Shown here piece after piece: positions 23,082 through 64,000 of a stretch of DNA of 64,000 nucleotides; positions within the stretch are counted from its first letter, which is position 1, and every line of letters begins with the position of its first letter. The stretch spans positions 21,576,001 to 21,640,000 of the forward strand of contig NC_135770.1 in the NCBI RefSeq assembly GCF_052425735.1, in the 5' to 3' direction. This DNA is from Oculina patagonica (taxonomy: Eukaryota). Position numbers and translations under genes: made by a program. The notes under the pieces were generated by a model. The model searched no databases. It worked only from the letters and a program-made list of their open reading frames with translations, and was not told the DNA's origin.

Positions 23082-25091
23082 TCAGATCCAATTTCCTTTC
23101 CCTGTGTCAGCCCTTTGACTTCGCCGTAACCGGATCCAGACACGTAAAAAGAGCAATACGAATAGCATAGCGATCAAGAAAAATATAACACACATCACTA
23201 TTAAAACAGTATCAACGGTGTCGTTGGATGAGCTGACATCCGTTATCGAAGATTTTGCGTGGCAAGCCTGCTTGTGTTTTTTCAAATCTTTCTGAAGGGA
23301 CCGCAACTTTTGCTGCATATTTTCGCAACTTCCGGTTGGCGTTTCGTTGTGCGGCACGCACTGAAAGTCTTTCACGCCTGCGCAGAAATCCCTGGAGAAA
23401 AATACGTTGTCTGGCGCGCTTTTGAATCCAGTGTTCAGGCGGACGATCTTGCCGAGCGTGAGGGAATGGACCTGGTCGATTTCCTGTGAATGTGAAACAA
23501 AGGGTTTAAGTGGAAATTTGATAGACTTTCTACATACATGTTTTTTGGATCACTTAAAAAATGGTTTATTCTGTCTTGTTCCACAATTGTTTCTTAGGCT
23601 GTGTTCACACTTGGTGCCTGGTCACGGTGCGCGAGTACGATTCTCGCTGGGAATTAATGTGAACATACTATTTTTTCAAGTGCCCACGCCATAATTCGGG
23701 CACGGTGCTCGTGCCCGAGTATTCGGGCAGTTAATGGTACTTTGGTTTTCTGCGTGTAAACACGACGCTATTTTTTGCTGGTGCTCAGGTACCATGTGTT
23801 CGGGCACTAAGTGTGAACACGGCCTTAGAGGTTTTCTCGCCAAGTTCCCGTTAATAGTAGAAATATTCCTGGTTTCCTCGAAAGAATCTAAAAATAACCC
23901 TTATTCCTTAAAATAAGAAAGACCTTCCTTTTCCCTCCGTTATATGATCCCTAATATTCAGAAGAGTATCAACATTCAACGTTACCTTGCGATATCAATT
24001 CATTGCCAAGATGAAAAGAAAAGGACAATAGTTAAGGAGGACATTTGCTTGATGTGTAGCTATGTGCTAACAAAATCAATACTTAGTTAGGAGAAATCAG
24101 TTTTTTAAGTAAGGTGAACAGGTAATAAAAACTGAAACCACGTGGCAACATCCACCCACGTAAAGAACAGCAAAGCATATTTTTTTCCTAAACCATAAAA
24201 CTCATTCGTTTTTCGGAATGGTTAACACATAACGCAGATTTCATAACGCAAAATCTGATGCTGTTGTCAGTTTCTTTTTTGTCCTTTCTTCTTCTAAGGC
24301 AAGTAAAAATAAACGATAATAACGAACGACGTTTCGGAGTCGTCATGACACCATTTTCAAATTCAAAAAAGGAAAGAATAATAAGCCACGGTTTTCTTAT
24401 ATTCATGCGCGTAAATCTCTTTCATGAATTAACTCTCATTTAAACACCGATAAACCAATTTTTTTATAGGATTCACACACACCACCTTTAAAAAAAAATA
24501 GCCTTCAGTAGTTACCTCTTCAGACAAAAAACGTTCATACCAGAACCTGTCGCCGTCTCTCATTCTCAAGAAGTTACGCATCACGATTCTGCAGGAAAAA
24601 AAATTGTAATAAAAAAATCTCTAATAGAAAGATTAAGCATGACGTTTGTTTTTCCCGCGAACGGCAAAAATTCAACTTCTGCCGTCTGCCGTTTGGCGTT
24701 TGAACACGGAAATCAGTAGTTTTGTGTTTGTCGTGAATGTGGGATTTTTTCCTAATTTTATGGACGTGCAGAAAATAACACCTCTACGTCAGAATGCCAT
24801 AAAGTTGATGTCATTTTATAGAATTTAAAACTATACTTTGGCCATGAAATCGTACTGTTTTTCTTAAAAAAAAGACTTTGTTACTCACGTTGTAAAGGTC
24901 GGTCCCAGTTCACTGCGGTGCTCATGATCCTCAGCCAAGCCTCCTACCCATAAGTCTACATTGTTTATGTTTTGGTAAAGTTCCGCCATCTTTAGGGCAG
25001 TCTTGGGGTCGCTAGTAATTTCGGCAAAACTAGTTATCTCTACAAAGAATTTAAAACAAACACCATTTAACAAAACGACTCCTGTAAGTAA

Positions 25092-25126
<35 letters not shown>

Positions 25127-28100
25127 TCGACTGACTGTTTGAATAAATATCCAAAGGAAAACATGTCTGGCTGGCTGCCTGACTAGCTGGCCTAAATGTT
25201 ACAACCTTCATATATCAGTCACCAACCTTTCAAACCAAGAGCCTTTCGCACAGAGTTGTAATCTGGTAAGCCATGGTCTCTTCCCCGCTGTATGTTCATG
25301 GCCGCCAAGTCCAAACCAGCATGGTGACCGGACGGAAACAAAACGTTTCTCATATCATCTACCATCTATAACCAAAAGTGAAAACAACTTAAAACCATGC
25401 AGGATTTTACTTTCGTATGGTACTTCCTGGTTGCCAATCGTTTTTTTTATTTGGCTCTATTTATCACCACAAGAGAAGGCCTGAGAGAAATTGCCTGTCT
25501 ATAGGCTAATAAAAGAAGAAAGCAGAGAGCAGAAAAATGCCATGAGTTTCTGTTTCAAAGTTGCTCTCGTACAGCCGAGGACGTCATGCACCGTCAAACG
25601 AAAGGAACGCTATGCTCGAAATTAATCAGATTTTCACACACCAGATACTGTAGAAAGGAGGGAAAACTGCCGAGAAAAGGCAAAGTCGCACGTGCGCATT
25701 TCACAAATTTTCCCCTTTAAACTGAAATCGCCAAGAAGGTCTCTGTTACAACAAACAGTGAACGCAGTAAAGGTGTACTTCAAGCAAATAAAAGTTTCCA
25801 AACGAGTGAGCAATTGTAATGGGAGCATACGGCAAAGGGTAGCTTTAAGCACAAAAAAGCGTTAAGCTCGGCTTCTAATAAAGAAACTGTTGTGGTGAGT
25901 TGGCGGCCAAGTGAAACACTCATTCAATTGATAAGGAAGAAAGGAAAAAAAGACGATTTTTTAAATGGAGGAAAACTTAGAACTTTTATCAACTTCAAGT
26001 TGATAGTTGGCAAAGAGCTCTATATGCATGCTATCTCGTTAAGGGGGCCAAACCTTTAAATCGATCTCTTGTGCAGCTTGTCTGACCGCTCCTCTAAAGA
26101 GAGGCTCTATCCCTCCCTCTCTTGACACTCTTTCAGGAGAAAAGTAAGCGTCTCTAAGAGCGAGGTGACCGTAATGAGACATCGTACCATCCTCTTCAAA
26201 GCGCCACAAGTGAGTGTTGACTTGACTGTGACCGAATCTAACATTAAAAGAAGTGTGCTAATCAAATCTCAATGTCGATAACACAATATCTCAATGCACT
26301 TGTCAGTCAAACATCAAAGTTTAAGCAGCTGATAAACAATCTTCGTATTTTCTAAGGCAGTAACTGGTAAAATAATCATGCTTCATTTCAACATTTTTGT
26401 TAAAATACTCTGTTACACCGTGCTGATAAGACCCAACCAGGTCATAGCAGCTGTACACGGTCGCATTTTGGCTTTTAGTTCGTACTCTTTCATGCCGTTG
26501 TCGCTCTAAGTGTTCTACATATAGTGTCAGCCTTGCTTAAAAAAAATATCTAAAAATAAAATAAATATGTTTATAGTGGTCATGCACTTAGCTTCATATC
26601 TCAACGAGATAGCTAGTTTACAGGCATGCCACTGAAACAGAGGAAACAAATAATTTTAAATGAACATAACAAGGTTAAAAATCCCAACTGGCAGGAGGCA
26701 GACCAGTTGGCTATATACAAAGCGTGGTCGAGGATTTGAACTCGGGACAACCGAGAAACAAATCCAGCTAGTGGCAAGGGCAGGTCTTGAACCGGAGACC
26801 TTCGGATTACAATACCAGCGCCCTAAACCACTCGGCCATGCTTGCCTCCCCAAACTTTCTTTACGTTTCTCTTATTGGCTGATTAGATCTTTCACATATC
26901 CAACTTATACCAGCGACATTTTCGTTCACGGTCCCTTGCTATATCAGTTAAACATTATCAAATCATATCATAGTTTTGTCAATGATATATTTTGGATTCA
27001 TGTGATTTTGAAGCATGTTCAGTTTTCTGGACGCTGGACTCCACAACGTGCTATGACTACAAAAGTACAAATTTGAGTTTCGCACTCGAAAGTTGTGAAA
27101 TGTGGGAAGTGCCATCTCTTTTACAGCAGAACTTGATTAAATCAAGATTTAGATGCTATTAGTCCTTTGACCTGGTTATAATTATTATGACTCAACCTGA
27201 AAGCTGCTGTAGCCATGATGTTGCTCATGCCAACGTTCACGCTGTCATTGTACCCCTCATAGGGAGGTATATGCTCAGTTCCTCCCAACAGTGCTGGCAA
27301 ATATTCACGAAACGTGATGGCCTGGAGCTCAGCCGCCACCAGGCGGCGCGCGGCCTGGAATAACTGCTCGTCTGTAGCCTGGGAAACAGAATAAGCAACT
27401 TATTTGAGACATCCATTTAGTACGATAGATTTGTGATTTATGTCTGTCGTTGAAGGGGAAAAGGATCCAGTCACCTACTTTCCAAAGATTTATGTAACGA
27501 AAGCATATGTTTGTAATATACGATGTAGTTGTAACCAATTTGCAATGTGCAAAGTTTTTTCAACAGTGTCTATTGACTTTGTAGAAAACGCAGCAAAATA
27601 TTCAATGCAAAATATCGAATTCCCAGCCTTTTGAAAATAACCACATCAACTGTAAGCTTAAATATTACGTATATTTGGGTGAAGTCTAAACGAAATGGAA
27701 ATTTGAACAACGTGTTATTGATGGAAATTTCACATTTCCAGCCTTTTAAGAAAAACAGCATAGGAACAGCAACCATATTATAAAAATAACACATGGTCGA
27801 GCCTGAATATGATAAAACGTGTGTATAAAGGGTTCCCTATAAACGAACTTAAAAATATAAACGTGCTATTAAGTTAACTTTCAACACCTGACCCGTGAGT
27901 TGCTAATACAAGTGACTTATCTCCTGGAAATACTAATTACCTGTGGATATTTATTTTTGTATTCGTCGCAAAGCCGGTTGTGTTCTCGCACAAAGAGAGT
28001 GTGAAATGCAATCAACATTGGTTGAACATTAGCTCGTGAATCTCCGGCGGCCAAAAGACTGTCTGCATCACGGCCCAGCGGATTGTCATTTGCCACAGCC

Positions 28101-31100
28101 ATCGTGTTTCTCTGCTCGAGAAAGGGAAACGTTATAATAAAAAATCAATAACTTAAATATTTTGTTATGAATAGGGCTAACCACTCGACCAAGATAAGGC
28201 TGACCACTCAGTAGGGCTAAACACTCGTCCACCCCGTTTGCAAAGGTCACTGCCCCCGAATTTAGTCAGGCTACGCCCCGAGGTCCAAGCACTTACCCTT
28301 TTAATTTTTAACAGAAAAGGTAACCCTTTTGTATACCTCCCATAGAAGATAGTACTCCTTTCCCATACCTACAGAACAGTTACTTCATTTTCTTTCTTTA
28401 TATTTAACTTGAATAACCCCCTTAAAATATTTATAAAATAAACCGATCACTCGTTGGGTCTGTTCAAGACATTTTGAAAGGCTCTTCTAAATATCTAAAT
28501 AACAGTTTTCCCTTTGCCCTTTTGTACACTTCAATCGTGAAATCTCTTCTCTTTCATATACCTACAACTTTCATAAGGTAGGCCCCTTTCGGGCGGAGCG
28601 CCAATCGCAGTGTAGTCCACTATAGGGAGTACCCCCTGGGCACTCATTCCTTGTTGGTACCCATTTATACATTGAAGTGAATAGGGACATAGGGAGCATA
28701 AAGATTTTTTGGCCAACATGAGCCTGAATAGTCGCCACGTCATGCTTGCGTCGTTTTGGTTGCTAATGATTCTTGTTATTTCCTTTACCTGTTCAGTCAA
28801 CGAAGTATTGATATCGTAAGAAGAAATTATAATTTGACAAAATCGCGGCTGAAACGTACCGGTATAAGACCATCAGGTCCAAGTTTCAGCTTGCCATCTT
28901 TGAATTCTCGTAACGCATTACTCCTTGTTTCAGACTCGCCATACACCACTGAACCGTCAATATATGACGTCAGCCTGTTAACCTGTTGTCTTGGAGTGTC
29001 GGTAAAGCGCCCGGTGCACCTAGAACAAAACAACTTATTGAGACAAGGCTCTTTTCTGCAGTTCGTGCGAATTTTGGAAGGTATGAAGAGAGTGTTCCGC
29101 CCCTTATTGCTTCCGAAAGCACTCAACCTATGTTATGTAATGTTCCAGAATCCACCATAAGTCGGATTTCAAAAAAATTCAATAACGCCTCCCCCTCCAC
29201 CTTTTTGGAGGCTTCTATCTACACATACTCCAATTAATACAATTAATGTATTTCCTCCATCCCGCCTAGTATGTGTAATTTTAAAGGAACTAGTTTCAAA
29301 GCTCGCCATGGGATGACTCACTACAAGGTTCTATTTCAGGTTGCTTGAGAAGAATTGTCGAGACAAAATATTTCAAGTCACCAACACAATATATTTTTCT
29401 TCGACAATAAAATCCACCGACCGGCCTCTCTTCACTTTTTAACAAAATAACATTGACCGATACAATAAATCGAACCTGTTATAAGTGGAACGCACAAAAG
29501 GAAGATAGATATCGCCTTTGTTCAGAGGATCGAAGTGGACATCTCCCTGATTAAAGTAAAAAATCAAAGAACGGTTATGAAACCGAAACGAAAATACAGC
29601 TTAAATGACAAAGCATTTTTGTTAGTTTTTTTAAACTGACCTTCGGTACTTTAATAGGAAGCCATACGTCACTCACGACGCCTTGAAATTCATAGCGAGG
29701 CAGCGGGCTGGAGAAATCTGTGTCGTGCGCTAAAAACTGCAGAAATACTTCATTGTGAGTTCCTCTACAATAATTATTGTAATTAATCAAAGCTCAGACA
29801 AGTTGATTTTTCTTATCGTCCAATAACTGACTGACTGACTGACTGCCTGACTGACTGCCTGACTGCCTGACTGACTGACTGACTGACTGACTGACTGACT
29901 GACTGACTGACTGACTGACTGACTGACTGACTGACTGACTGACTGACTGACTGACTGACTGATGGACGGACTAATGAATAGATGGCCCATGGCCCATGGA
30001 ATATGTTACCTGACCGAAGTGCGAATGTAAATCGCTAAGTCTGCGAGCGCTAATCTTGGATTCAATCTAGAAATAAACACAACGAATGTCTATCAGAGTC
30101 AAATTCCAAACTGTATTCCCCTTAGATCCGAACTAGCAAACAACCGTGTGACGTTGGCCAGATAATAAAAATAGCATTTAAGGAAGCCATAAAGCCGAGT
30201 TAAATTGCTCGAGTACAACTAATTAATTTATTTTGCTATACGTATATGGATTATGTCATTAGCAAAAAGAGAAAAGAAATTAAGCTCTCGAGAACTCTAG
30301 CCCAGCTAGCTAGCCCAGCATCCCTTGCTCACCGAGCCCCCAACGCCGTTTACTCTTATTTTGCGCTTACAACTTTTCACACCTGTTGAAAGAGCTTGTT
30401 GCTGACTGCTCTCGGCGGGGGCCTGTGAGAACCAAATCCGTTCACTTCATCCGTATATCTACATTTCCCTGTTTGCTTCTCTTCTGGGGTACATGTGCCG
30501 GAGGGCAGTGCGATGCCATCAGGGTACACGGCCGGTACATCACGTGTTACGTCCTCCAAAGCAGCACCCCACCACACGTGATCTTTATTGTATGAGGTAC
30601 CGTCCAGTCGTCTGAAAGATAAGCGACGCCCTTTAAGGGCGTCACGCAATCTTCCTAGCTCAGAAAATTGCGTGATGAGCCCAAAAAACGTCCACATAAG
30701 AAAAAAAACCCCTTTGTTTGCACACAACAACCAAACTAATGTAACTGCGAGTTTTTCAAAAACTATGTTATTGACCATATATTTCTGCTACACCAACGCT
30801 CCGCCTTCCAAATCGACGAACAAAGAATTCCTTTTTTTTACCTCAACTCGCGGTAGCACCATAACCATTTACCTTTAGAACGGTTTTACTTGGGCGTCAA
30901 AAATTATTAATTTGCATTTCTACGCTTAATGATTGGCTTAAAAATCTCGCGCCACTTTTTTGACCAATCGCATGCGTTTGCACGCATTTTAAACAAACTA
31001 CATGTATTTTCTTCAAGTTTTGATTTATTCACTGAATTATCTGTGCCAATTGTGATTGGCAGAGTGATTGATTCGGCTTTGGTTTTACGACACTCGATCC

Positions 31101-33573
31101 AAAATCACTCTATCTTGTCCTAAATGTATTAACAACAACATTAAATTTCCCTACCTTCCTTCTGTCACTGTTGGCACTGGTCCGATTTTTCTACCACCCT
31201 GGCATTCGCTATTAGTGTAGTTGCGTTGGTACGAAAATATCACGAAACCAGTGCTATTGGCGGTCAGCGATTGTTGACCCGAACTAGGTACCAGACCCAC
31301 CGTGTAGCCGAAGATCTCAGTACTTAGTTCTGCCGGGTTTATTCCAGGATTTAGTTGGAAATTCACTGTTTTTCCATCTGGATTGACAGTTACCGTTGCA
31401 TGAGACGGCTGAAATGAAATATGAGTTGAAAAGTTATTTTCTTGTAATAAAAATTAAACAATGGTTATTTACCGTCGTATTGGTAAGCTGGAAAGCGTAG
31501 TTTATTTCATGTTTTACTATCGCAACGTCGCGTGTTCAAGGACTGTGTAATAATAATCAGGAATAGGGGTTGTAAAATTAGAGGGGGCAGAGTGTAAAAT
31601 AATACACAGAGAGAGGGAGAGGCAATGTCTTAATTATTTTATGAAAAGATGGGGTGATACTTGTTAACGAAATCACACGTTCATTTTTCTCGTTGTGTAT
31701 AATGTATGAAAAATGAAACAGAGGGCATTGCCAGTAATTGTGTCATGTTTTAAATTATTTTGACTTTTAACTTTTTAATATTAGATCTTTCCATTTTCTG
31801 CCTTCTTGTCAAGTTGGTTTGTGTAAAAGCTCCTAAACCGCTATCTCGATCAACTTTTCTCATATGACAGGAGCCTATCTGCATATGAATGCTCGATAAA
31901 AGATGGCTTGGGGAGAGGGTAACCCCCCCCCCCCCCCCCCCCAGGGACACCTCTTCTCCATATAAACGGGCCCTAACATAAGGTAGAAAAACATCTCACC
32001 GGTAAAAGAAAAAGCACTTTACCTGTTTATTAATCTCAGTAACTTTTAAAGTAAAACATTTGTCAAGGGAAGAATATGGCCACGTCTTGCCTGAGTCAGC
32101 AAACCTCAAAAAAAAAAAACATTCCAAAGAACTAAATCATTGATCAGAGCTTACATGCAACAGAAAACAAACCAAACAATTCCGCACCGAGTGGGTGTCG
32201 TATATCAAAATACGACACTCAAGAAACATCGAGGGGACTGAGCGCCCGTTTATAGTGCATAAAGGTATCTGTGGCGTCTTTAATATTCCCTTTCCCCCCC
32301 TATTTTCGAAAGAAACCGTAAACGTTCACGTACCGTGAAAATAAAAAACGTCAAGAAAATGCCGCATGGCGCTGAGATCTATTTTAACTTCCTTCTTTCG
32401 TTAATCTATATAGAATGCAAGTTTTGGCAGTTCGTGACTTTCGCCACTTTCTTTGCGTTCGTTGCCTTTACGAAGAAGAAGAAGAAGAAGAAGAAGAAGA
32501 AGAAGAAGAAGAAGAAGAAGAACTTTCTTTGCTATTGATCTGCAACGCGCATGCGTGTCCGGAATTCTGGAGTGTTACATGAAACTGAAACAACTTTTAA
32601 AACACAATACCTTTCAGGCCTTATGATTCGTATTCTTGTATTAGGAATCACATCCCTGTACGTCACGTGCATGGCACTTGCTGGCCACGTGACTTTTACG
32701 GTGACGTTTCCTCCATCTCGCCCCAGTCCAAAGTGAGCGGCAAGAGAGCTCTGGCCCAAGTAGTGTGTACTGGAACCGATTTCTTGTGTCTTGAAAAAGA
32801 AAACAGAACAGATAGAACAGAACAAATCGAACAGAAGTACCTTTTGATATATACTTTTATAGATTTGAATACAGGAAACTTCCTCGCAGTTATGCCAGAA
32901 GGATGCCTGAATTAATTCAGGTTTAAAAAGGATACGACCCAGTGACCTTTCCGATACCGGTGCAGTGCTTTAACAACTGAACTTTAGTTTCTTATATTCC
33001 CTTAGATGATGCGAAAATGAAACTGCATATATAATATTTCATATAGTCACTTTCCTATGATTTTATTGGTTTTTGAAAGGACATAACCAAAGATCTGGTA
33101 AAGACATATCCTTTTTATCCGGCACTGAAAATTGTTTGTTTGCTAGTCTTTAGCCTTCATGATTATTTGACATCATATTCACTTTCACGTCCACCCGATG
33201 CGCCTGCCAATTAACATTCCCAGATTGTGAAATCGAGGATTTATGACTATTAATTACTGTACTCCGATAATGCGAGAAGTAAAAAAATGATTTGACCTTA
33301 TTTCGATTTTCTTAGAGTTTAAAGATACGCATAAAGAAAGATAATACTTAAGACACTGTTGGTTTACCTGGGTGTGGTTGTTTTGCATAATAACCTTCAC
33401 ACGGGCGGCGAGACTGTCACATAACTTGTCGAGATTCAATAGGCAGCTAAACACAACATGAAATGCATGTTAGACAAAAAGACTCACATCTGACACTTTC
33501 TAGCTAGTCGACCGGTTAGCTCAGTTGGTAGAGCGACAGACTACAGTGCGGGAGGTCTCGGGTTCGAGTCCCA

Positions 33574-33614
<41 letters not shown>

Positions 33615-35298: not shown

Positions 35299-35348
<50 letters not shown>

Positions 35349-48972: not shown

Positions 48973-49824
48973 CAAAGACAACATTATCAACACGTGTCAC
49001 GCGTCACTCCTTTTATTGTGTTCATCATGTTTTTGTACATAAATCACCAGACAGCAACAATCTTTAGATAGTTACATATGTCAACTCGTCCTGGACACTC
49101 ACTTGATTCCAAGTCATCACCTTGAGCTATATACATTGGATGTGCAATAAATATTTTAACGTTTCTTTGACGATGGTATTGTCACGATTATATTTTTGTC
49201 ATTCATGCTATAAATATCGAAAGTAGAACAAAGCCTAAGCAGTATATACTGTCACCATTTCTGAATCTGTATATACCGCCATTTTGCCATTATACTGTGT
49301 ACTTTTACTGTGCTCCTGTATTGGTTAAATACCACTTTTTACCTCTTTATTGTGTATCTCTAATGGGTCCTCAACTGTGAAACTCTATTGGCAAGGAACG
49401 TCTTTGGCCCTCATATTGTGTACCACTATATTGGGCCACTATAATTGTGTCCCTTTTTGGCCTTTAAATTGTATACCTCTTTCAGGCCCTACCTTGTGCA
49501 AATCTTTTGCTCTTTCAACCGTGTACTGCTATTAGGCCCTAATTTGAGAACCTTTTAGGCCTCTTAATTATGTACCACTATAAGGCCCTTTCTTGTGAAC
49601 ATCTTTTGGTCTTTTAATTCTATTGGCTTTTCACCGTGTATTTTTCTTTGCGCTTAGTGTAACTTAGTTGCCGGGCCTTAATTGAAATAGTAAATGAAAA
49701 TAACGCAATTGAATCAAAAATATTAAGCTTGCAATAAAGTTTGGTCGTTTAGGACGAAAACTACAAACTACAAAGACACAGAGACTGCAACACAATCCTG
49801 ACTGAAAGACCTGTCAACTTTGTC

Positions 49825-52021: not shown

Positions 52022-52056
<35 letters not shown>

Positions 52057-55000
52057 GAACAAACAACATAAACAAACAACTAAAAGAAGCAAGGAAAACA
52101 TGGATGTATTCAGACGTCTGCGCTACTTGATGTAACATGAATGCGAATGATGCACGCATTGTGTATTTTAAAAACACTACCTTTCAAACCAAGCGCCTTT
52201 CTCGCTGTGTTGTAATCTGGTAAGCCGTGATCTCTTCCGCGCTGTATATTTTTAGCCGCTAAATCTGAACCAAGTTTAAGACCAGATGGAAACAATGCGT
52301 TCCTCATGTCATCCACCATCTAGATGGAAAAGGGAGAAATGGAATGGTAAGGAAAGGCAGGGAAAGGAAAGAAAAGGAAAGGGAAGGAAAGGAAAGGCAA
52401 TATCATTTAAAGATCTTCTACTACAAGCAGGAAGTTCCTAATAGTATGCTACATAAGTGATGACTTATGACGATTCTGACAAGAGTCATGTTAATCCTAT
52501 CTCAATTGATCATAAACTAGGTAACTAGCAGGCGAAAAAATGTTATTTCAATTGCAGGTTAATTGTATTAAAAATCCTCAAAGCCGCGAGGTGAACATTA
52601 ATTACAAACCTTTAAGTCGACTTCTTGAGCAGCCTGTCTGACCGCACCCCTAAAGAGAGGCTCTATTCCTCCCTCCCTCGACACTCTTTCAGGAGAAAAG
52701 TAAACATCTCTTAGAGCGAGGTGACCGTAATGAGACATCGTACCATCCTCTTCAAACCGCCACAAGTGAGTGTTGACTTGACTATGACCGAACCTTAGGA
52801 GGAAAAAAATTCTTTACGTTAATCGCATGAATGTGATGGCAGTTAAAGATTTATTACGAGTGCTATTTGGAAATTTTTTTTAAATTTGCACGAGCCTTTT
52901 AGGCAGGTGTAATTTGAAGCAATATCCAAATATCACGAGTAGTGTAAATCTTTAATTGGTCAAGCTTTCCTCCGATTGCACATTTTATTTTATATATAAC
53001 TGAGAAAAGCGTGCGCATTTAATTGGACAGCAGTTCAAATTAAAAATTGACGTTAAATTTGACTGCTCTCAGCCAATCACCATAAAGTAATTTTCTAAAC
53101 CATATAATAATTCGTGTAATGAGATTCGTGTTATGGTAAAGCTACATCAATTTGGCATAAATTTTGCATTTTATCAGGGCTTTTATTACCTGAAAGCTGC
53201 TGTTGACATCATGTTGCTCATACCAACGTTTATGCTCTTATTGTACCCCTGATAAGGAGGTATGAACTGAGTGCTCCCCAAAGCCGCTGGCAAGTATTCA
53301 CGGAACGTGATGGCCTGGATCTCAGCTGCTACTAGGCGACGGGCGGCCTGGAATATTTGCTCATCTGTCGCCTGGGGAATAGAACAGATAAACACAAGAT
53401 ATTATACGTTTCTACAAATGGTAACAGTAGTTTTCAAGTGTCTTGGGTTTTGATAGGTAACTAGAAATTTTTTTGAAAATTGCTCTTTACATTCTGACAA
53501 AAACAGTTATCATTATCATTAACAGTACTCGTATAATGTCAGAGCGCACGCGCTCTTTTTCTCTCTATTCGAACACGCTCGTTATCCCCATTTTTCGCCC
53601 GCCGGCCTTTCTTTAGCTTTATGCCACTGGCCGTCATTAAAATGGGATTGGGTTCAGCATTTTGTCGTAGCAAAATCAACAATGACTACTTATTTACCTG
53701 TGGATTTTTGCTTTTGTATTCGTCACAGAGTCGGTTGTGTTCCCGCACAAAGAGAGTGTGAAGTGCAATCAGTCCTGGCTGTTCATTGGCTCTTGAGTCC
53801 CCTGCAGCCACCAGACGGCTTGCATCGCGACCAACAGGGTTGTCATTTGATACAGCCTCTGTGTTCTCCTGTTTACCATACACAGAAATATTTATTTACT
53901 ATGTAGGCAACAAAACACCTGTTTACTTTACGTTTCATTGTTTATTTAAAAAACTTTTTCTGAACATGCTTGTGAAACAAAAATAGTTAAAATAAGCGAC
54001 AATAATACAGAACAGTGTTATTAATTTGTGTCTTTTATTTTAACGATAATTCACGACAACTTACCGGCAATAGATCTCCTAGCCCAACTTTCATCTTTCC
54101 ATCTTTAAATTCTCGCAAAGCCTTGTTCCTTTCTTCTGTTTCACCGTATACAACAGAGCCATCGATAAACGACGTTAGTTTATTAACTTGTTGCCTTGGA
54201 GTGTTGGTACGTCGGCCTGTGCACCTGATTAGACATAACAACAATATATCTAAGATGACTGGCCACATCCTGACTACGACCAAAGCATCAAAAGTAGGAT
54301 AATAATAAATCTAGCTGTTCCCATTTATTCTTTTTTAAAAATAACGTTATTAGAGTCAGAACGAAAGAATGTTGTACAATGAATAGCCAAACGCAATAAG
54401 ACTACTCTTCTGCATCATTAGTTGGAAGATTCGGGAGATTGCCTGCGCCCGGTACAGTCTCTCGTCCGGGTAATTTAAGGCCATGTTACACGCAATTTTT
54501 CCTGCAACTTGCAACGCAACGATGACGACTAAAAAACATTGCATGTTGCAGAGGAGGTGTCACACCCACGCAACTTGCAACTTTCAACTTTCGCAACTTG
54601 CAACGCGCCGGCTGAATAATTAAAATCTCAGCGGTAACGATTGGCTCTGAGCACTCCGATTGGCTAATTCCAGTACAATTGCGTTGCAGGTTGCGCTTAA
54701 TATGTTACACGCAGCAACTTGTCTCGCAACGTTGCGAAAAGTAGAGGATAGTTCAACTTTTTCTGCAACTTGCAACACAACATTTTGTTGCGTTGCAGGT
54801 TGCGAAAATGGGGGTGTTACACGTGCAATTTTTTCGCAACTTGCAATGCAACGTTTGCTGCGTTGCACGTTGCAGGAAAAATTGCGTCGTGTGACATGGC
54901 CTTAAGGGTTGGCGGACGAGAGATGTACTACCTGGCATATTCGGCGTCACCAGCTAAGTAATGTGGCAGCTTTGATAAGGTTGAAATTCTACTGGTCCTC

Positions 55001-58000
55001 TGGTGCTATTGTTCTCTGGAAAAGTGGCGAGCCATTCACGTGAGACTTTGCGAAAGCCTACCAACCCAAACCCCACTGAAACTTAACTTCCACAAGTAAA
55101 TATTCACAGCTTGTTTATGAGCGAAGAAATAAAAAAAGGACAAAGTACGAGTTGCAAGTTACTAAGGATTAAAAAAAACAGTTCTCAAACCTGTTGAAGT
55201 TCGTACGCACGAAAGGAAGGTAAACGTTGCCTTCGTTCTGTCTGTCAAAATGAATATCTCCCTGCATCAAGACAAGGTAAAAAAGAAAGCATTTGTTAAA
55301 CAGAAGAACCAGTCATTTATTCCATGGATGGTAACAGAAGCTTCAATATAACAGTAAGGGACAGTGCGTCCCGAGCTCTTAAAACGCCAAACCGGAGAGG
55401 AAAATATGCGTTTTCCCAAATTTATAGAGATTAGTGTGGACGGCGCCTCATATTTTGTTGTTGTTGTGTGTGTTGTTGTTGTTGTTGTTGTTGCTATTTT
55501 TGTAGTTGTCATTGTTTTTGTAAAAGTGGAGATAATCTATAAATGAAGTGAACTATCAAAGGAGAACGGGGGCTACCAGATATCCAAAGAGTTATAAATC
55601 CTCGGCAAGCTGTCGAGGCAGCCACCAGCACTGTAATTGTCTAGTCAGCTCTTCCTACGACGTCATAACATGTCTTACATGAACTGCGTTCGCAGTAGGT
55701 ATGCACACAAGCAATTCACACGTTCAAAAGCCATTTAGAAGATTCTCAAAACTGACCTTTGGAACTGGAATAGGTAGCAAGACGTCACTCATTATATCAA
55801 AATCGCGACTTGACAGCGTAGGTGATGAATCTGTGTCATGCGCCAGAAACTGTAAAGAATAAAGAAAACAACGAGGGTCAAAAAGTGGCCGTGTGGTTAT
55901 CATTTTGTCACATGTTACTGCCATAATGTAACATTCGTCTTACTACACGCTTTCGTCGTATTGTCACCTCACGAATGAGTGATAAATTTTCGCCAAACTG
56001 AAGGACATACCGCTGATTGTTTACACTCTAACAAACCCTTTCAGACAGATGAGAACCCCTCTTTAGACACCATGTGGGATTTCTTACCTGCCCAAAATTC
56101 GGATGAAAATCACTGAGTCGGCGAGCGCTAATCTTGGATTCAATCTGCAATAATATACAAATCATTTTTATTAGCGCCGCTGTAAAAACCTTACATTTTT
56201 TCTTGTTCTTGTACCAAACATAAGTACGATAGCCAGTTGCTGACCTGGAGTAAGTTGCGTTCCTTTTTTACTGAAAACAAACTTTCTCGAAGAGAAGACA
56301 GAACTACAGTAAGCGGCATTGAATTAAGCGACCACCCTGACAAATTCTTGGGAATTGCAACATATATTTATTGTTCACGCTACCTGTTTTAACTGTCACC
56401 CTTTTCTGTGGGCGCGGTCGCTTTTAACAAGTTTCAGCTGGGGTATTTTAATGTCCTAGGCCTGCGTTCAACGGTCACTTTAAATAAGCGTATTTTCAAG
56501 AAATGGTTAACGCTTGTGCAAATGGACTGTAATATGATATGATTTCACTGAAAACCGAACGACTGCAACAGACGTTCCACGGATGACCATGATGTCGACG
56601 TCCTTGCGAATGAACATTTCTTTGAAACAGCTTGGTGGGAAACCTTTATTAACAGTCCGAACTAAGCGGTCACCAAACCCATACCCAAGGGAGACCATTT
56701 CAAACAAGAAAACCACAGAGGCTGACCGTGTATGTTGAGAACCTTTTCTCATGAGTCTTACCTGCTGGAAAAGCTCATTGCTTATTTCTCTCGGAGAGGG
56801 CCTGTTAGCGCCCGCGGGCTGAGCGATGCCGTCAGCGTACATGGCAGGTGCATCACGTGCCACGTCCTCCAGCGCTGCACCCCAAAACACGTGATCTTTG
56901 TTGTTCGAGGTGCCATCCAGACGTCTAAAATACAAAAGAACATAGGTCCGCAGTTCGTACGTATTTGAGCTGTTATTATGCATAAAAATTGCTTACTAAG
57001 GTTTACACGTACATCTTTATAGCCATATCAAAACACACAAAACACAAGTAAGAGGGTTGGAATATTATGGCCTGTATTTTTCTTGTAAACGTACTTGGAA
57101 ACGTTGCCTTTTTTGATTTAGAAGGAAAGCAGATAACATGAAACACTCGACAACACGGAGTAAACGATTCCAGAAATTAATATTCACTCTTGATTGATAA
57201 AGTCATTTTAGACATTTTTACCCTGTGCCCCCCCCCCCCCCCCGTTTCACCGGCTGGTCAATGTTGTCTGAATTACTGATAACGTTCAACTTTAAGCAAA
57301 ATATTAAAAGGGGAAGGGAGTTTAGATTAAAAATTATTTGGTTATCTTCCCAAAGAGGGCATTGTTTCGAAGAAAAAATATGCCATTTCTAAGAGAGTAT
57401 CCTCAAAATTTTAAAACTGCATGTACGAACACAGGCTTCAATTTCGTTATTTTTCTTTTATTTCAATCCCTTTAGAATAACGAAAGACATTTTAATGTCT
57501 TAAAAGTATTAAAATATTAAAATACTCTTCTGCACCAATTAACATGATTAAAGCAAGGTAAAGAATCATCAATTTAACAACATCCATTTCTTACCTATCA
57601 TCTGTTACACTCGGCGTGGAACCTATTTTCCTTCCCGCTTGACATTCGCTCGCAGTGCTTTGTGTAAACACAACATAAGACGTGGTACTGGTGGTCAGCG
57701 GTTGTCCGCCTGGACTAGGTAATACTCCCACCGTGTACTTGAAGGTCTCGTTGCCAAGGTCCGTGTGTTCTACGCCAAGATTTATTTTCAAATCCAACGT
57801 TTTCCCATCTGAATTTATGGTGACTTTTGATTTTGAAGGCTAAAGAGAAAAATATTATTGAACTGTTATCCTTTGTTCGCATTTAACACTATTTTTTACA
57901 TTAAACCATAGTTAATAGAGGGAAATGGTTACGAGGCCCGGCAAACACCAAAGGAGCAAAAAAAAGAGGCCATGATTTATTTTGGAAAGAACATCTTTTG

Positions 58001-61000
58001 TTTTGCGCTTATACACTAGACCATATGCATGAATTACGTAATAGCAATGTTTCTATTGGTTAGTTGCATGAACACACGTAACCACCTATTGTATATTGTC
58101 AGGTTTTGTGCAGGATCAGCCCCCAAAATAGCGAACAAAAACATAGAATTAAGAACTTTTCCGGGCTTCCTAACCATTTTTCGCTATTAACTATGATTAA
58201 ACTGGGTTGCGATCAACACTTCTTCAAGTGCCAGAAATAATTTAAACTTTATGAGCATTTATCATTTTGAACATCTCTTTGAAACACTTTGTATGATTTC
58301 CATCAAGTAAACTCTAATCTAGGGACTTCTAGAACTAAATCAGCTTTAGCGTGATGCAAAACATGTCAAGAAAACTTCTAGAAATAACAAAATTAATTGT
58401 TTCGCATAATTCAATTTGTTTAAGTATTTGACCTACCTGTTGATTAATCTGTGTAACGTACAAAGAGAAACATTTGTCAAGCGACGAGTATGGAAACGTT
58501 TTCCCAGAATCAGAGCTGAAAGAAAAATTCAAAATAGATTCCAAACATTGTTATCATCTGATTACTTCCTATAATATAAATGTACTGTCAAAGGACATCG
58601 TAATCTGAAAGAGGCTAAAGACAAGAGGAGGGACGAATAAGCAATCACGACACCTTTTTTTCCTAACGTAAATTCGTTCACTCGTCTAGTTTTAAGATCG
58701 GTTATTTTCCTAGTGTATTATCCGCAGCTGCAATTTAACATGTTTAGTAACTTTTACTTGGACAAATGCGTGTTAAGAGTAGAAGCTAGTTCTTTTCTTT
58801 TGAACTGGAGACATTAACCCAAAAGCAAACTAGAAGGAGGCAAGTAAGGTCAATTGACACGCGCGTTTGAGCGCGTCACAGGTGCGTCCTTAATTACGGC
58901 GGCAACGGCAACGAGAACGCAACCAAACAAAAGGTTTAATGAGCAGAACAATAGCTCTGCACGCGCGTTAAGAACAACGTGAAATTACCAAATCTTGCGT
59001 GAATTATAGAACATGAACTTCAATGGCTAAGGGCCTGATTACATGGCGAATTTCATCCCGGGTTGAAATTTCAGCCCGGCATCCAAAACAAATCTTCTTA
59101 AAAACACGTCTGCGATTATCTGAAGAAAGTTTCATCCCGGGCCGAATTACAGCCCGGGCTGAAATTTCCAGCCCGGTTTCTGAAACCGGGCTGGAAATTT
59201 CAGCCCGGGAAAACGGGCTGAAAAACCTCATGTAATCGCGTCTTCAATTTCAGCCCGGGCTGAAAGTTAGCTTGCGGATGCGCAGTGGTGGTTTTCAACG
59301 AAAGAAAATGGCGGCCACGATAATTATTCAATTTTAAAAGTGCTCAGCCCGGGCGAAAATTCTCCCTGTAATAGCAACAAAATTCCAGCCCAGCAAACCG
59401 GGCTGAAATTTCAGCCCGGGCTGAAGTTCCCCATATAATCGGGCCCTGATTTTTCATATTTCTATTTGAAATTTATTCTTTGCTTGGCGTTTTAATTTCT
59501 TCGGCGTCCCATCGACATTGTTTAGGCTCCCTGTTCTACGTACCGTAACTCAGTCGTTAGTTATTTCGTAAGTCAGGTCAGTCACAGCTGATTCCAATGA
59601 AATATTTACCTGTTGGGATGTACTACTCGCAGTCTTGTATCAGGAGGCACGTCAGAGTACGTTATCGTGACACCGGACGGCCACGTGACGTTAACAGTCA
59701 CCTGACCGCTGTTTCGCCCCAGTCCAAAGTGAGCGGCACGAGAACTCTGACCCAGGAAGTGTGTACTTGAACCGATTTCTTGTACCTAATAAGAAGGAAA
59801 GCTTTGTCGGAAGGGAGCTTATAATGCAAAAATGTCTTTTTCAAGACCAGGTCAAGAGCTTTCAATCGTTAATTTTAACTGATTACTTGAAGATTTGCCC
59901 TCCAACGACGCTTAATAAGCTCGTGGCATGTTATCGTAAATACTCTTTTTCTTTGGCCATCGTAAAAAAGACACGCAAACTGCGGTGATGAACATTACGG
60001 ACAAACGCATTGTTGGAAAAAAATAGACCTTTTACTTGACGTTTCGTATGCTTCTACATACATCTTCAAAAGTAACCGTTAAATGGAAGTACAACTAAAT
60101 TGTAATTGGCATGTTGTTGTCGTTGATGATGTTGTTGTTGTTGCCTGCTGTATTTGTTGTTGTTTTCGTTCTGTTCTTGTTGTTGTAGTTTTCAAAATTC
60201 CTTCTACAAGAGGCAATTTCTTTAGCTTTATATTGTTAATTTGAGTTTATAGTTTTGTCGATGACGTCAGTGCTGTTTTAACACTTTCACTTCCAACAAT
60301 GGCCAACTTCTAAATTTTAAGGTAACTGACGAGCGTTATGATGCTCACAGTCAAAGGATATAACATGAATGAAGTGCGTCTCAGCTTTAGCGATTCAGCT
60401 CTAGTAGAAACTGCATGAGACAGCAGCTCACAGACATTGTGGACGACAAGATAAGCAAGTACCTGTTTGTGGTTATTTCCCATCGTAACTTGCACACGGG
60501 CACCAAGGCTGTCACATAATTTATGTTCATTCTTGAGGCACCTGGAAGAATGGATGGTGGATAATTTCATAACAGTTTTATGTAAAATTCAGTTGGCAGT
60601 TTGGAATATACGTCAAAGCAAACAGATCTATTAAAAGGAACGAGTGAAAGCGATGAATAACGTACCGCTGTACAACACGTACTCTTATCCAGTTGTTTGG
60701 CTCTTTTTGTTGATATTGGTAGAAAAATGGAGCTCCAACGTTATTGCAAACTATGATGTCTTCATCGCCATCATCTGCACACAAGATAAAAGGGTTAAAA
60801 AATGTAGGTAATATTCATCCGGTGTTCAGCGTAATGTTAATACAAAGAACTGGTACCATCACCTGAACGCCTGTAACGCCTTTTCAGGTCCAGGTTGGAA
60901 CTATTGTAAAGTTCTCCTTTTTAACTTTCCCTCAGTTATGCCAATTACCACCTTACCATGTAATATTGACAAGAATTCGATGATGTATCAAGATATTATG

Positions 61001-64000
61001 AGCTAGTTGATGATTTTTTTGACGTTCTGTTTTGACTGTTGGCTGTCATGCTAAGTAGCGTCACAATAGCAGCGAAACATTGCAACTAACGAGACAAAGG
61101 TTCTACCAGTTGGGCCAATTTAAATCTAATGTGAAAACCGGAAACAAACGAATACCGATGATGTCTCTCAAGTAGCTCGAGTACAGTCATCAGCTTTCTT
61201 TCTCGCTGTCATTTCGCGACTTTCAAACAAAAGTTTAAAGCAATGTGGCTTTATTACTGATGTAGTGAAATAATTCGTTTTGTTACTATACTGTCTTACC
61301 ATCATAGTCCCATTTGAGCAGACCTCGTCCTTTCCCTGTGCCACTTAGTCCATACAAAGCAGACACCTGAAAATTAATATAGGATCTTTAAATAATATAG
61401 GATAAATTAAATTAATATAGGATCGTTTGCCTTTGCAAAGACATCTGCAAATGGTTTGATATTCTAGTCTTCTCGGATAAGAACGATAAACTGTAGGCCC
61501 CGTCTCCTGCATCTTCAGTGTCACGGTCAGCAGGGGACGTTAAAGAACCCACGCACTGATCGTAAAAAGAAGGGCATGGAGTTCCCGGTGTTGTGGTCTG
61601 GTCTTTGCCCATTGTGCTGTGTACTGTGGAATGCTCGGAGATATTAGCTGTATAAGCTACTCTACAAATCCGAGGGTAAACAAAAGTGATGTATGTCTCT
61701 TATCCCGCGATTTGAATAAAATCAGGCTTTACCCCTGCTAGGGAGTATTTAGCAGTCGGAAGAAGATTTCTTCCTAATGGATAGTTTTCTAAAAATTTTG
61801 TTTTGTTAGAGTCATTACTTTTTTCAGTTAAATTGCACATACCTCTTGGGTTTTTCCGTTTTGACCAGAGCCAAGGTTTTGCCACAAGTGCATCTTATTA
61901 AAGTCACTTCCTAACAAAATTTTGGCATAATAATAGGGGTTCAGTAATAAGTGAAAATGTCTGTTCTAAATATTGGATATTTCCATTAAAAGAAAGCAGG
62001 TCTACGTTCTACCCTCTACGTACCGACAGCAGGCCGTACAAATGAGCTTACAACTCCTGAAAGCGCAACATACGCGCTATGTTGTAAGTTTCCGATTAAA
62101 TTCAGTCGAAAGCAATGATGTGCTGGCTTTGCTCTTATCTTTGCCCGATGCTATGCTCTTTATTTGGCTCAGTTTCTCAATCAATCAATATTAGCAACGA
62201 GTTTTAGCTTATCACGAGACTTTCTTAAGGCGGGACCTTATTAGTTCATTAAGTTGGTTGTTTGAATTTTTATGATTCTCCAGAATGAATAAGTCAAGTT
62301 TCTCGTTATAATCTTCCTCAGCTCATCCGACTATACTGCACTGTATTTTAAATAAACTATCAACACTTGAAATAGAAACATTGCACCATTTTGCTCATAG
62401 AAACAGACGTACCACTGCTTGAGATGAAATCCACAAATTCATTGTTGTCAAAGTCCATTAATGCTGCTCCCCATGCCAAACCTCCATTTTCCACACCAGC
62501 CTAGCACACAAGACCAACCAACAGCAAGATAAATGGTGGTGGTAGTGGTGTAAAGTATTATAGTAAGGACATCATCTTCATTGAAATGGAAATGGAAAAT
62601 GAAGGGAATTCTGGAGACAAAACTTGTCGAAATCATTGTTCAGTGCACTGTATGAAAGGCCCAGCTCCTTATAGACTTTCAAACAACACGGGGTTTAACC
62701 CTGTCGAACTCAGCAGATAATCCATACGTTCTCGAGTAAAAAAAAAATCAGTATTAATCAAACACAAAACTCTCCCACCAAGATTTACAGATAACGCAAG
62801 GAATATTTTGATACAGTTTTGATGGTGATCTTCGTTTAAAATGACGGTGATCTTGAGTGGCGATCTTGGGTTAAAATTAATACCAAATCTTAGGTGCCCA
62901 TCCTAGTACCTAGAAATCAAAAATTAGTTTTATTTTATCTTAGAATATCAAAAGAAAAACTCAGCTTAAAGAAGAAACATAAAGTACAGTTATATCACCT
63001 GGTCTGTGGCTTCTTCAAACTGTTTTCCTCCTCGATTACGGAATAACACGTTTCCACTATCAACATACATGCAGCCAGACATTGAACATTCACTACGGTT
63101 CTGCCACATGGCGGTAGAAAACCAGTCGAGGTAGCCATCATTGTCCCAGTCTCCTATTGCATGGCCCTTGGCGTTCTGAAACGAATAGGTAACCCTTGTT
63201 GAATGGTGTAAGCACTTGTATACAATTAAGAGTCGATAAAATTTTTGAAACAGTAAAGGCCATTTTGGTACTTTCTTTCTTCTGCAGACGTGTGCCAAAT
63301 GTCATATCCCTTATGCAGAATAGCGTCCTACACAGTTTCTGTGATGTAACTTATTAACAGCAAAGTTTCTACTTATGGCAGTTAAACGCTATAACTAAAA
63401 CCAAAACAATTTTAATGGCCAGTCATAACGAAACCAATGACAATACAAACCAAATACACAGCCGAAACCAAGTAAAAGAAAACGCGTGAGACCAAACCCC
63501 GATTGGTTTGGTGTTGCATCCAATTGGCTGAATTGGCTGTGTAGATGGCTCGACATTTTTTAACTACAGCCAGAGCGAGGCAATGCAAAACCAAAGTAAT
63601 AGCAAATGGGCCAATTTCGATAATAAAAGTTCTAACTACACTCCGAGGCTCTTGGAAATAATTGAAAAGTTATCACATCGACGTTGAGGGATGAATAAAT
63701 GATTTCTTTTGTTTTATTACCCAATCCGTCGAAGCCAATTAGATAGGCCAATTTTGGGCCAATTTTCTCCCAAATTCAATTAAAAACGAATAAATCATTT
63801 CTTTTGTTTTATTCCCCAAAGCCTCAAAGCCAAGTTACAATCATGTCACTCTATTTTTTTGCAAGATCTACAACTTTTCACAAATTAAATCTCGCAGATG
63901 CTTTTAGGCTGGATTACACATTTTGTCGAGAATTTTTATTCGAGAAAAACAAGTCGTACCTGCTTTGCGCCCAGGCCACAGGACTGTGTACACTCCGTGA
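49825..64000 (-). CDS. CRTAC1/ASPIC-UnbV + haem peroxidase type I membrane fusion protein, paralog B (5' end beyond the right edge)
   Basis: Exons (high-low): >64000-63960, 63175-62999, 62500-62413, 61910-61843, 61366-61300, 60774-60666, 60541-60463, 59785-59610, 58515-58437, 57839-57595, 56924-56762, 56144-56088, 55849-55757, 55261-55191, 54224-54065, 53868-53698, 53371-53190, 52793-52610, 52319-52181, 51870-51720, 51461-51389, 50145-49825. One-to-one match with exons 6-27 of paralog A and the same phases. Motifs: [42 protein letters not shown]; [27 protein letters not shown]. Confidence 0.88.
50784..51367. mobile_element. PIF/Harbinger-like MITE with TTCCGGAA subrepeats
   Basis: TIR GGGCCTGTTTACATGATTCCGGAATGACTTTCATTCCGGAACG with its inverse at the right end; TA-containing 3-bp flanks. 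Confidence 0.8.
54479..54901. mobile_element. PIF/Harbinger-like MITE with TTGCAA subrepeats
   Basis: GGCCATGTTACACG...CGTGTGACATGGCC, flanked by TAA/TTA. Confidence 0.8.
59031..59446. mobile_element. PIF/Harbinger-like MITE with CAGCCCGGGCTG subrepeats
   Basis: GGGCCTGATTACATGG...CCATATAATCGGGCCC, flanked by TAA/TGA. Confidence 0.75.
60032..60075 (-). ncRNA. Second copy of the minimal hammerhead motif (C3-to-U core variant)
   Basis: Identical to 10238-10281 except TTGAAGA in place of CTGAAGA; intronic and sense to peroxidase gene B. Confidence 0.55.
61420..61690 (+). mobile_element. 5'-truncated copy of the 33.5-kb SINE
   Basis: Close match to about 33620-33880 (ACATCTGCAAATGGTT...AATCCGAGGGTAAACAAA). 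Confidence 0.85.

Follow-up and report, generated by a model that had tools for sequence, protein, structure and literature searches.

Tandem coral genes joining a CRTAC1-type propeller to a haem peroxidase with a predicted membrane anchor

When exons resembling the CRTAC1 propeller precede exons resembling an animal haem peroxidase, and this order occurs twice in tandem, do the two kinds of exon belong to single genes, and what kind of protein would such genes encode? The question is raised by a 64,000-nucleotide stretch of the genome of Oculina patagonica (NCBI RefSeq assembly GCF_052425735.1, contig NC_135770.1, positions 21,576,001 to 21,640,000 of the forward strand), here called the window and numbered from its first letter. 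The window is eukaryotic DNA with a GC content of ~39%, and its minus strand holds stop-free segments with FG-GAP, ASPIC and peroxidase character, in the same order, twice; we refer to the two sets as copy A and copy B. They are probably two old tandem coral paralogs, each encoding a single type I membrane glycoprotein, a predicted surface enzyme in which a CRTAC1-type module is linked to a haem peroxidase that is catalytically complete. The grounds for this reading are the structure of the genes, the splicing of propeller to peroxidase exons, the domains they encode, the catalytic residues that are retained and an architecture that is kept across Cnidaria and Porifera.

Exon models were built by pairing GT donors with AG acceptors that keep the frame, guided by conservation between A and B and corrected against orthologs. 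The resulting copy A gene runs on the minus strand from 42403 to 23082 in 27 exons with compatible phases and GT-AG ends at every intron, and its coding sequence of 4191 nt, translated into 1396 aa, contains a terminal stop (23082-23084) and no other. The initial annotation had described 27 phase-compatible exons joining without a stop, which is what we find. The features of copy A are as follows, an exon with no other basis given being from the splice-site model.

42089-42403, minus strand: exon 1, predicted by homology; ATG at 42403, signal peptide, conserved N-terminal stretch, donor CAG/GTAATT
40370-40601, minus strand: exon 2, predicted GT-AG; propeller start and first DxDxDG loop, homologous to the microbial relative P0155
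39466-39779, minus strand: exon 3, FG-GAP repeats 2-3 (Pfam FG-GAP_3, E 4e-16; splice sites)
38679-38725, minus strand: exon 4 (47 nt), kept in copy B at 64950-64904 (extended coordinates, just past the window end)
38180-38282, minus strand: exon 5
37476-37604, minus strand: exon 6, FG-GAP repeat 4
36798-36974, minus strand: exon 7, FG-GAP repeat 5 (Pfam FG-GAP_3; splice sites)
36169-36341, no strand: assembly gap (N), noncoding, in intron 7; flanking exons in phase 0
35395-35482, minus strand: exon 8, FG-GAP repeat 6 (Pfam FG-GAP; splice sites)
35037-35137, minus strand: exon 9
34652-34718, minus strand: exon 10
34234-34342, minus strand: exon 11, FG-GAP repeat 7 (3' end RNA-confirmed)
33368-33446, minus strand: exon 12 (RNA joints on both sides)
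32611-32789, minus strand: exon 13, UnbV_ASPIC (Pfam E 2e-9; RNA joints on both sides)
32023-32104, minus strand: exon 14, start of the linker beta module (RNA joints on both sides)
31155-31408, minus strand: exon 15, cadherin/Big_9-like beta module (RNA joints; model of the equivalent B segment)
30612-31154, minus strand: intron 15, spliced out in X2, X5 and X6 and also covered by contigs (RNA contigs)
30383-30611, minus strand: exon 16, first peroxidase exon (Pfam An_peroxidase positions 1-58; RNA joints)
30010-30066, minus strand: exon 17 (RNA joints)
29641-29736, minus strand: exon 18, distal site FLAHD, with GQ from exon 17 (RNA joints; motif)
29476-29546, minus strand: exon 19 (RNA joints)
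28860-29019, minus strand: exon 20, Ca-site motif TSYIDGS (5' end RNA-confirmed; Pfam)
27941-28111, minus strand: exon 21, catalytic Arg, and Val at the Glu ester-link position, SRANVQ (Pfam, splice sites, alignment)
27197-27378, minus strand: exon 22
26054-26237, minus strand: exon 23, proximal His, FRFGHS (splice-site model, motif)
25227-25365, minus strand: exon 24, Asn of NIQRGRDHG (splice-site model, motif)
24889-25039, minus strand: exon 25
24516-24588, minus strand: exon 26
23082-23483, minus strand: exon 27, end of the peroxidase, stalk, transmembrane helix (aa 1351-1382), 14-aa tail, stop (splice-site model, hydropathy)

The assembly gap falls inside intron 7 (36797-35483), for which no RNA joint was obtained. 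Exons 7 and 8 meet on whole codons, reading ...FEDVTKE and AGVTNGG... within one continuous FG-GAP repeat; the corresponding intron 7 of copy B (498 nt) contains no further exon, and the orthologs from Actinia and Porites run on here without a break. With flanking exons in phase 0 and no additional exon in B or the orthologs, the gap hides no exon and leaves the reading frame unaffected.

The central issue is whether propeller and peroxidase exons end up in the same mRNA. RNA contigs from four public runs (X1, X2, X5 and X6), which come from three studies, were placed on 28700-34500, and they confirmed nine consecutive copy A introns, from 34233 down to 29020, with ends that read CT..AC on the plus strand. 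The chain supported in this way runs from the exon ending at 34234 through 33446-33368, 32789-32611 (ASPIC), 32104-32023, 31408-31155 (linker), 30611-30383 (first peroxidase exon), 30066-30010, 29736-29641 and 29546-29476 to the exon beginning at 29019. The key joint, from 31155 in the linker exon to 30611 in the first peroxidase exon, was seen in X2, X5 and X6, the adjoining joints were present in all runs, and one X1 contig of 902 nt links exons 11 to 15 by way of the ASPIC exon. In another species, an mRNA-like contig of 4630 nt (SRR22097836) holds an uninterrupted open reading frame (ORF) of 1343 aa with all the domains, 73% identical to the full A model. The propeller/ASPIC exons and the peroxidase exons of copy A are spliced into one mRNA. 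The interval that the initial annotation had singled out for RNA evidence, 32611-30611, is thereby bridged, the ASPIC exon being joined via two linker exons to the first peroxidase exon, and the junction coordinates proposed for A (32611/30611) and for B (59610/56924) proved exact.

Two repeats in this part of copy A stand out by their RNA-contig depth: one at 30834-31027, in intron 15, reached 7,000-49,000, and an intronic one at 33356-34131 reached up to 8,600. The latter element also occurs in a copy B intron, at 61418-61663.

Copy B, likewise on the minus strand, matches A in all 27 exons and in its intron phases, and encodes 1327 aa. This bears out the earlier suggestion of a second copy with the same exon structure over the ASPIC-peroxidase junction. 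The gene extends beyond the window by ~12 kb, reaching 75993 in extended coordinates, so that exons 1-5 and part of exon 6 lie beyond 64000; these 5' exons were read from the next 20 kb of the same contig. The following exons lie within the window, all from the splice-site model.

63960-64000, minus strand: exon 6, in-window part (full exon 64088-63960)
62999-63175, minus strand: exon 7
62413-62500, minus strand: exon 8
61843-61910, minus strand: exon 9
61300-61366, minus strand: exon 10
60666-60774, minus strand: exon 11
60463-60541, minus strand: exon 12
59610-59785, minus strand: exon 13, UnbV_ASPIC
58437-58515, minus strand: exon 14
57595-57839, minus strand: exon 15, linker beta module
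56762-56924, minus strand: exon 16, first peroxidase exon
56088-56144, minus strand: exon 17
55757-55849, minus strand: exon 18, FLAHD (also motif)
55191-55261, minus strand: exon 19
54065-54224, minus strand: exon 20
53698-53868, minus strand: exon 21, SRANEQ, Glu kept (also alignment)
53190-53371, minus strand: exon 22
52610-52793, minus strand: exon 23, proximal His
52181-52319, minus strand: exon 24
51720-51870, minus strand: exon 25, weak acceptor, the least certain boundary
51389-51461, minus strand: exon 26
49825-50145, minus strand: exon 27, stalk, transmembrane helix, tail, stop (also hydropathy)

A GenBank protein of O. patagonica, ACROYT_G041095 (P0416), is 99.7% identical to B residues 230-1279 (numbering of our initial B model), and this deposited copy B model already fuses propeller, ASPIC, peroxidase and transmembrane helix. 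It is without the true exons 1-4 and carries an unrelated Pro-rich N-terminus instead; the signal peptide and the first three propeller repeats are missed. The family-specific linker exon is present in two copies only in this genome.

With both genes at hand, one can ask whether each copy might be an accidental join of neighbouring CRTAC1-like and peroxidase genes. Contigs that run from exon 15 or 16 into intron 15 were found in all four runs, and the spliced 31155>30611 joint was not seen in X1, as might be the case if two transcripts met here. Yet the canonical joint is present in X2, X5 and X6, from three studies, with the adjoining joints in all runs; both paralogs share identical exon phases; the full architecture is encoded by single uninterrupted ORFs, both on mRNA-like contigs and in gene models from Cnidaria and Porifera; and exon 16 has neither a start codon of its own nor a signal peptide context. 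An accidental join is in our view highly improbable.

The order of domains in the predicted proteins is a signal peptide, seven Dx[DN]xDG FG-GAP repeats, UnbV_ASPIC, a cadherin/Big_9-like beta module, An_peroxidase, a stalk, one transmembrane helix and a short, predicted cytoplasmic tail. In the CRTAC1-type module the FG-GAP repeats with their calcium loops make up a beta-propeller, and UnbV/ASPIC is a beta-sandwich. In A, a hydrophobic signal-like N-terminus is followed by the loops (residues 158-527), ASPIC at ~589, the peroxidase from 759 and the helix at 1351-1382, after which come RLRR and the 14-residue tail. Pfam searches with single A exons returned FG-GAP_3/FG-GAP, UnbV_ASPIC and An_peroxidase in that order, and with the deposited B product and the orthologs they returned An_peroxidase (~500 bits), FG-GAP_3 and UnbV_ASPIC, all above the gathering cut-offs. 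For An_peroxidase (PF03098), P0416 scored 511 bits over profile positions 2-530 (cut-off 25), and single A exons scored 34-52 bits; no NCBIfam model matched at E 0.001 or better. Seven loops of the form Dx[DN]xDG, a motif that binds Ca2+ (PMC3123361), are found in A and seven in B. A C-terminal hydrophobic helix with basic residues after it recurs in A, B and most cnidarian orthologs. The initial annotation had described about seven FG-GAP repeats followed by ASPIC, peroxidase, stalk and transmembrane helix, with a complete peroxidase domain, and the loops, the Pfam order, the recurring helix, the nearly full profile coverage of the B product and the retained catalytic residues all agree with that description.

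Is the propeller truly of the CRTAC1 type? The fold was modelled with AlphaFold on the propeller and ASPIC part of the Porites ortholog, which is 74.6% identical to A over this part and 77% identical to B over its full length (17-sequence alignment, pLDDT 87, pTM 0.92). The model matched solved murine CRTAC1 (9etn_A) with E 2e-26 and TM-score 0.72 over 534 columns, the next match in the PDB being an integrin at E 2e-9 and TM-score 0.39, and in AFDB/Swiss-Prot its top three matches were CRTAC1 of human, frog and mouse, each at TM-score 0.74. On the strength of this model, the label of CRTAC1/ASPIC-UnbV propeller, first given from the letters, is structurally sound for the predicted proteins.

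The linker beta module (exons 14-15), which the initial annotation had called small and Ig-like, is harder to place. Pfam found no match on A exon 15, but microbial relatives gave Big_9 (E 1e-10) and Cadherin_5 matches at the colinear position. A model of the equivalent B segment is all-beta (pLDDT 77.5); Foldseek returned nothing significant for the module, and in VIA-align 2 the top PDB rows were nearly all cadherin EC domains, weak matches with Z 4.9 or below.

Whether the peroxidase domain could act as an enzyme depends on its active site, which for the B product was aligned residue by residue to the solved peroxidase 8s6c. The motifs GQFLAHD (distal Gln and His), GDSR (Arg), FRFGHS (proximal His), NIQRGRDHG (Asn) and TS[YF]IDGS (Ca site) are kept in A, B and the orthologs, and the residues named are strictly conserved from sponges to corals. 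The positions that form ester links to the haem differ. At the Asp position A and B have Ala, and Asp was never found there in any fused relative, animal or microbial; the Glu position is occupied by Val, Ile or Met in A, anemones, Hydra, Clytia, sponges and microbial relatives, and by Glu in B, Porites and Orbicella. This distribution suggests that Glu was regained in the coral B lineage. The haem would be held non-covalently in A and by at most one Glu ester bond in B, and since A has neither link residue, copy A is unlikely to be a strong halogenating enzyme.

The same residues bear on the possibility that the peroxidase domain serves as a scaffold or in adhesion, without catalysis, comparable with the peroxidase-homology domain of DUOX or with adhesive peroxinectin, in a protein that would be purely a recognition or adhesion receptor. 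The whole family is without the haem-linking Asp, and most members, A included, are also without the Glu; a KGD tripeptide in A exon 19 moreover recalls the integrin-binding motif of peroxinectin. KGD is, however, absent at the same place in B, and covalent haem links are not required for peroxidase activity in the peroxidase-cyclooxygenase superfamily. The strict conservation of distal Gln, His and Arg, proximal His, Asn and the Ca site is the pattern expected of an active enzyme, and we regard a purely non-catalytic role as unlikely.

The fused architecture extends well beyond Oculina. It is predicted in Porites lutea, Orbicella faveolata (where the protein is named 'thyroid peroxidase-like'), Actinia tenebrosa and Actinostola, in Hydra vulgaris (UniProt V9GVG1 'Peroxinectin'; LOC100209490) and Clytia hemisphaerica, and in the sponges Corticium candelabrum and Sycon ciliatum, as well as on several transcript-like contigs. 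These animal relatives are 45% to 74% identical to A over essentially the full length, and all instances found are automatic annotations. The uniqueness implied by the initial annotation, which did not recognise the architecture, is therefore not borne out: public protein sets of corals, anemones, hydrozoans and sponges contain it, as does the deposited copy B model. As to whether it is a described family, predicted proteins sharing the architecture are public, and no paper on FG-GAP/ASPIC with an animal haem peroxidase, or on the ortholog identifiers, was found in full-text literature, where subscription papers are thinly covered, so that absence is no proof. No bilaterian member came up, a result of a single word-indexed search that does not establish absence from Bilateria. 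Contamination or recent transfer as a source of the genes is ruled out by 26 spliceosomal introns per gene, a 38-Mb chromosome-scale contig and orthologs across Anthozoa.

More distant relatives, 27-36% identical and colinear through propeller, linker and peroxidase, were found in marine metagenomes and a Tara eukaryotic metatranscriptome. The search with single exons against 1.8 billion representatives returned mostly exon-sized fragments and was useful only through P0036 and P0042, and a profile of microbial proteins and A exon pieces (A1) was noisy, its own first row scoring 308 bits, and still brought up the Actinia ortholog. The microbial fused proteins are P0036, P0276, P0151, P0308, P0155, P0160, P0328, P0420 and P0421. 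With these, one BLAST alignment to A extends over propeller, linker and peroxidase, at 32-36% identity. Some of their genes are intron-less ORFs on gene-dense contigs, beside glycoside hydrolase or heparinase genes, and the contigs appear bacteria-like, judging from gene density and neighbouring genes. No C-terminal transmembrane helix was detected in P0420 and P0421, the only two checked for it. When a profile of the microbial fused proteins was compared with bacterial and archaeal species genomes, it found propeller-only relatives alone, in Myxococcota, Opitutaceae and metagenome-assembled genomes of cyanobacteria. Two arrangements seen among the metagenomic material may be recorded here. 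On a contig of 1.68 Mb (L013, 4424-12743) a fused gene lies head-to-head with a Big_9 + An_peroxidase gene in gene-dense surroundings, with GH43, CBM6, heparinase II/III and GT20 nearby; in P0185 and P0429 the domain order is reversed, with the peroxidase first.

Trees were made for both parts of the fusion. In the peroxidase-domain tree (103 rows, quick maximum likelihood) the animal fused proteins form one clade (support 100), within which A groups with two transcript-derived sequences and B with Orbicella and Porites, and an anemone sequence falls outside both. The duplication that gave A and B is thus an old event in stony corals rather than a recent tandem one. With support of 42, this tree gives no firm sister placement of the animal and microbial fused groups. 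The propeller and ASPIC tree (100 rows, quick search, biased sampling, no vertebrate CRTAC1 row) again has the animal fused proteins as one clade (support 100), and joins this clade with two microbial fused groups (SH-aLRT 95), apart from ~50 unfused CRTAC1-family proteins. The latter grouping would be compatible with a single origin of the fusion.

A wider scenario can be drawn from these trees, which we offer tentatively, as a possible but rather doubtful account. The fusion would have arisen once and be common to marine microbes and early animals, by pre-metazoan inheritance or by horizontal transfer; it would have been kept, surface-anchored, in sponges and cnidarians and lost in bilaterians. 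The ancestral state would have had no covalent haem links, and a later return of the Glu link in a scleractinian B-type paralog would have brought a different oxidative chemistry. The proteins would then add an eighth, as yet unnamed, family to the peroxidase-cyclooxygenase superfamily and would act where the animal meets seawater or microbes.

Several points weigh against the reading of the two copies as genes for a membrane-anchored fusion enzyme. The RNA joints cover 9 of the 26 copy A introns, and the four runs were labelled 'RNA?' by guess; their contigs skip GT-AG intervals, and hence they contain spliced RNA. The boundary of copy A exon 1 was set by homology to copy B exon 1 and the orthologs, without an RNA joint, and both this exon and the signal peptide of A are predictions. 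Signal peptide and transmembrane helix were judged by hydropathy only, and by the threshold used the sponge orthologs have no transmembrane helix. The comparison with the CRTAC1 fold was made on the Porites ortholog and not on a protein of the window. RNA contigs continuous with exons 15 and 16 cover intron 15 (30612-31154) in all four runs, with neighbouring introns at near-zero depth, and some transcripts, in which intron 15 is retained, would end just before the peroxidase. Reading through the retained intron meets an in-frame TAG immediately after '...TVTEGR', which predicts a secreted product of propeller, ASPIC and linker, without peroxidase or transmembrane helix.

Could this peroxidase-less CRTAC1-like protein be the main product, with the fusion a minor one? 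Besides the immediate stop, the depths in X1 would fit such a view, the intron-15 bin (30640-30833) having 28.4 and the exon-16 bin 28.9 while other introns are near zero. In X5 and X6, however, the intron lies far below the exon bin (12 vs 152 and 2.5 vs 30, respectively), and in the same runs splicing of the peroxidase exons further downstream is complete. Contig depth, being one figure per contig, is a poor measure from which the share of intron-15-retaining transcripts cannot be judged, and with a phase-2 donor of GTAG or GTAA, chance alone is expected to give such an immediate stop. The conservation of the full ORF across phyla shows selection on the fused protein, which again counts against the truncated form as the main product, and we find this alternative quite unlikely.

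For the fused membrane protein the following picture can be proposed. The protein would sit on the cell surface, where the stalk might hold the haem domain near the membrane, and the calcium-loaded propeller would bind a ligand such as matrix, a mucus glycan or a microbial surface. Extracellular H2O2 could then be used to oxidise substrates next to the propeller-bound target. One-electron chemistry (tyrosine or phenol cross-linking) or oxidation of iodide or thiocyanate would be likelier than that of chloride or bromide, at least for A, and redox power is probably not the same in the two paralogs. We infer from the domain content, as is reasonable and as the initial annotation had suggested, that adhesion or recognition would be coupled to oxidative chemistry.

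Partner domains are the means by which animal haem peroxidases act, as in the cross-linking of basement membrane by peroxidasin, the making of thyroid hormone by TPO and the supply of H2O2 by DUOX. A CRTAC1-type propeller on a membrane-tethered ecto-peroxidase would be a further partner-domain solution, kept through the whole of sponge and cnidarian history. To our knowledge, the function of the CRTAC1-type calcium propeller is poorly understood even in vertebrates, and the fused family may offer a tractable handle on the ligands of such propellers. The proteins may also bear on the use of extracellular H2O2 by non-bilaterian epithelia, be it in coral mucus and matrix, in dealing with symbiont-derived peroxide or in microbial control. 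The natural pair of A (no link) and B (Glu only) would let one ask in what way the chemistry of a peroxidase is tuned by covalent links to the haem. As annotations, the names 'thyroid peroxidase-like', 'peroxinectin' and 'uncharacterized' are misleading.

Some other features of the window may be noted. GC content is highest in the interval between the copies, 43000-49800, where it reaches 0.46 at 46001-48000; open segments on the minus strand at 45570-46087 gave no Pfam match, and 43000-49800 contains no obvious peroxidase-family exons. An element of ~140 nt near 63605-63745 is present in dozens of copies at ~80% identity on many chromosomes. Intronic microsatellites are (ACTG)34 at 29826-29962, (GAA)17 at 32472-32522 and (ATTG)12 at 35300-35347, the first of which yields long 'SVSQ' pseudo-ORFs in all three frames.

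How do the two genes compare with known systems? With CRTAC1 (LOTUS, cartilage acidic protein 1; 9etn) and with bacterial proteins of the CRTAC1 or ASPIC-UnbV family they share an FG-GAP/VCBS propeller with Dx[DN]xDG loops followed by UnbV_ASPIC, as well as an extracellular location. Identity to vertebrate CRTAC1 is only ~19-20%, however, and there is no EGF-like domain match in the Oculina proteins, which instead have the cadherin/Big_9-like module, a 530-aa peroxidase and the transmembrane anchor.

On the peroxidase side, TPO is a type I membrane protein whose ectodomain haem peroxidase lies ahead of a single C-terminal transmembrane helix. The likeness is that of a membrane-anchored animal haem peroxidase, and the Orbicella ortholog was auto-named accordingly by NCBI; the sushi and EGF domains that are C-terminal to the enzyme in TPO are, however, absent here, the partner is N-terminal and CRTAC1-like, and the Asp ester-link residue is missing. 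The predicted mode of action would thus be that of a membrane-anchored peroxidase in the manner of TPO, with a targeting module in the manner of CRTAC1. The solved peroxidase domains closest in sequence to the B product are 8s6c (528 aa, E 4e-130) and Dictyostelium DdPoxA (6erc, 'Peroxinectin A', E 2e-94), both single-domain, soluble proteins without propeller, ASPIC or transmembrane helix; 8s6c has the canonical GQFLDHD, whereas the fused family has GQF[LIV]xHD in which x is never Asp. Peroxinectin is a soluble, single-domain peroxidase with a conserved integrin-binding KGD or RGD, in contrast to the fused family with its transmembrane anchor, its large N-terminal module and a KGD in A and not in B. 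Peroxidasin is likewise a multidomain extracellular animal haem peroxidase, one that cross-links matrix, but its LRR, Ig-C2 and vWC partners were not found here by Pfam, and the peroxidase tree places the peroxidasin-type P0435 and P0437 in a different clade. Mammalian-type (Family 1) peroxidases and peroxidasins have Asp and Glu ester bonds to the haem; A is without both and B without Asp. The microbial fused proteins, by comparison, have the same domain order and the same loss of haem-link Asp and Glu as A.

In summary, the proteins belong to the peroxidase-cyclooxygenase superfamily and carry a CRTAC1-family module, and their architecture is not that of Family 1, peroxidasin, peroxinectin or vertebrate CRTAC1. 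They are an undescribed variant of a known enzyme type, with an architecture that is already present in sequence databases.

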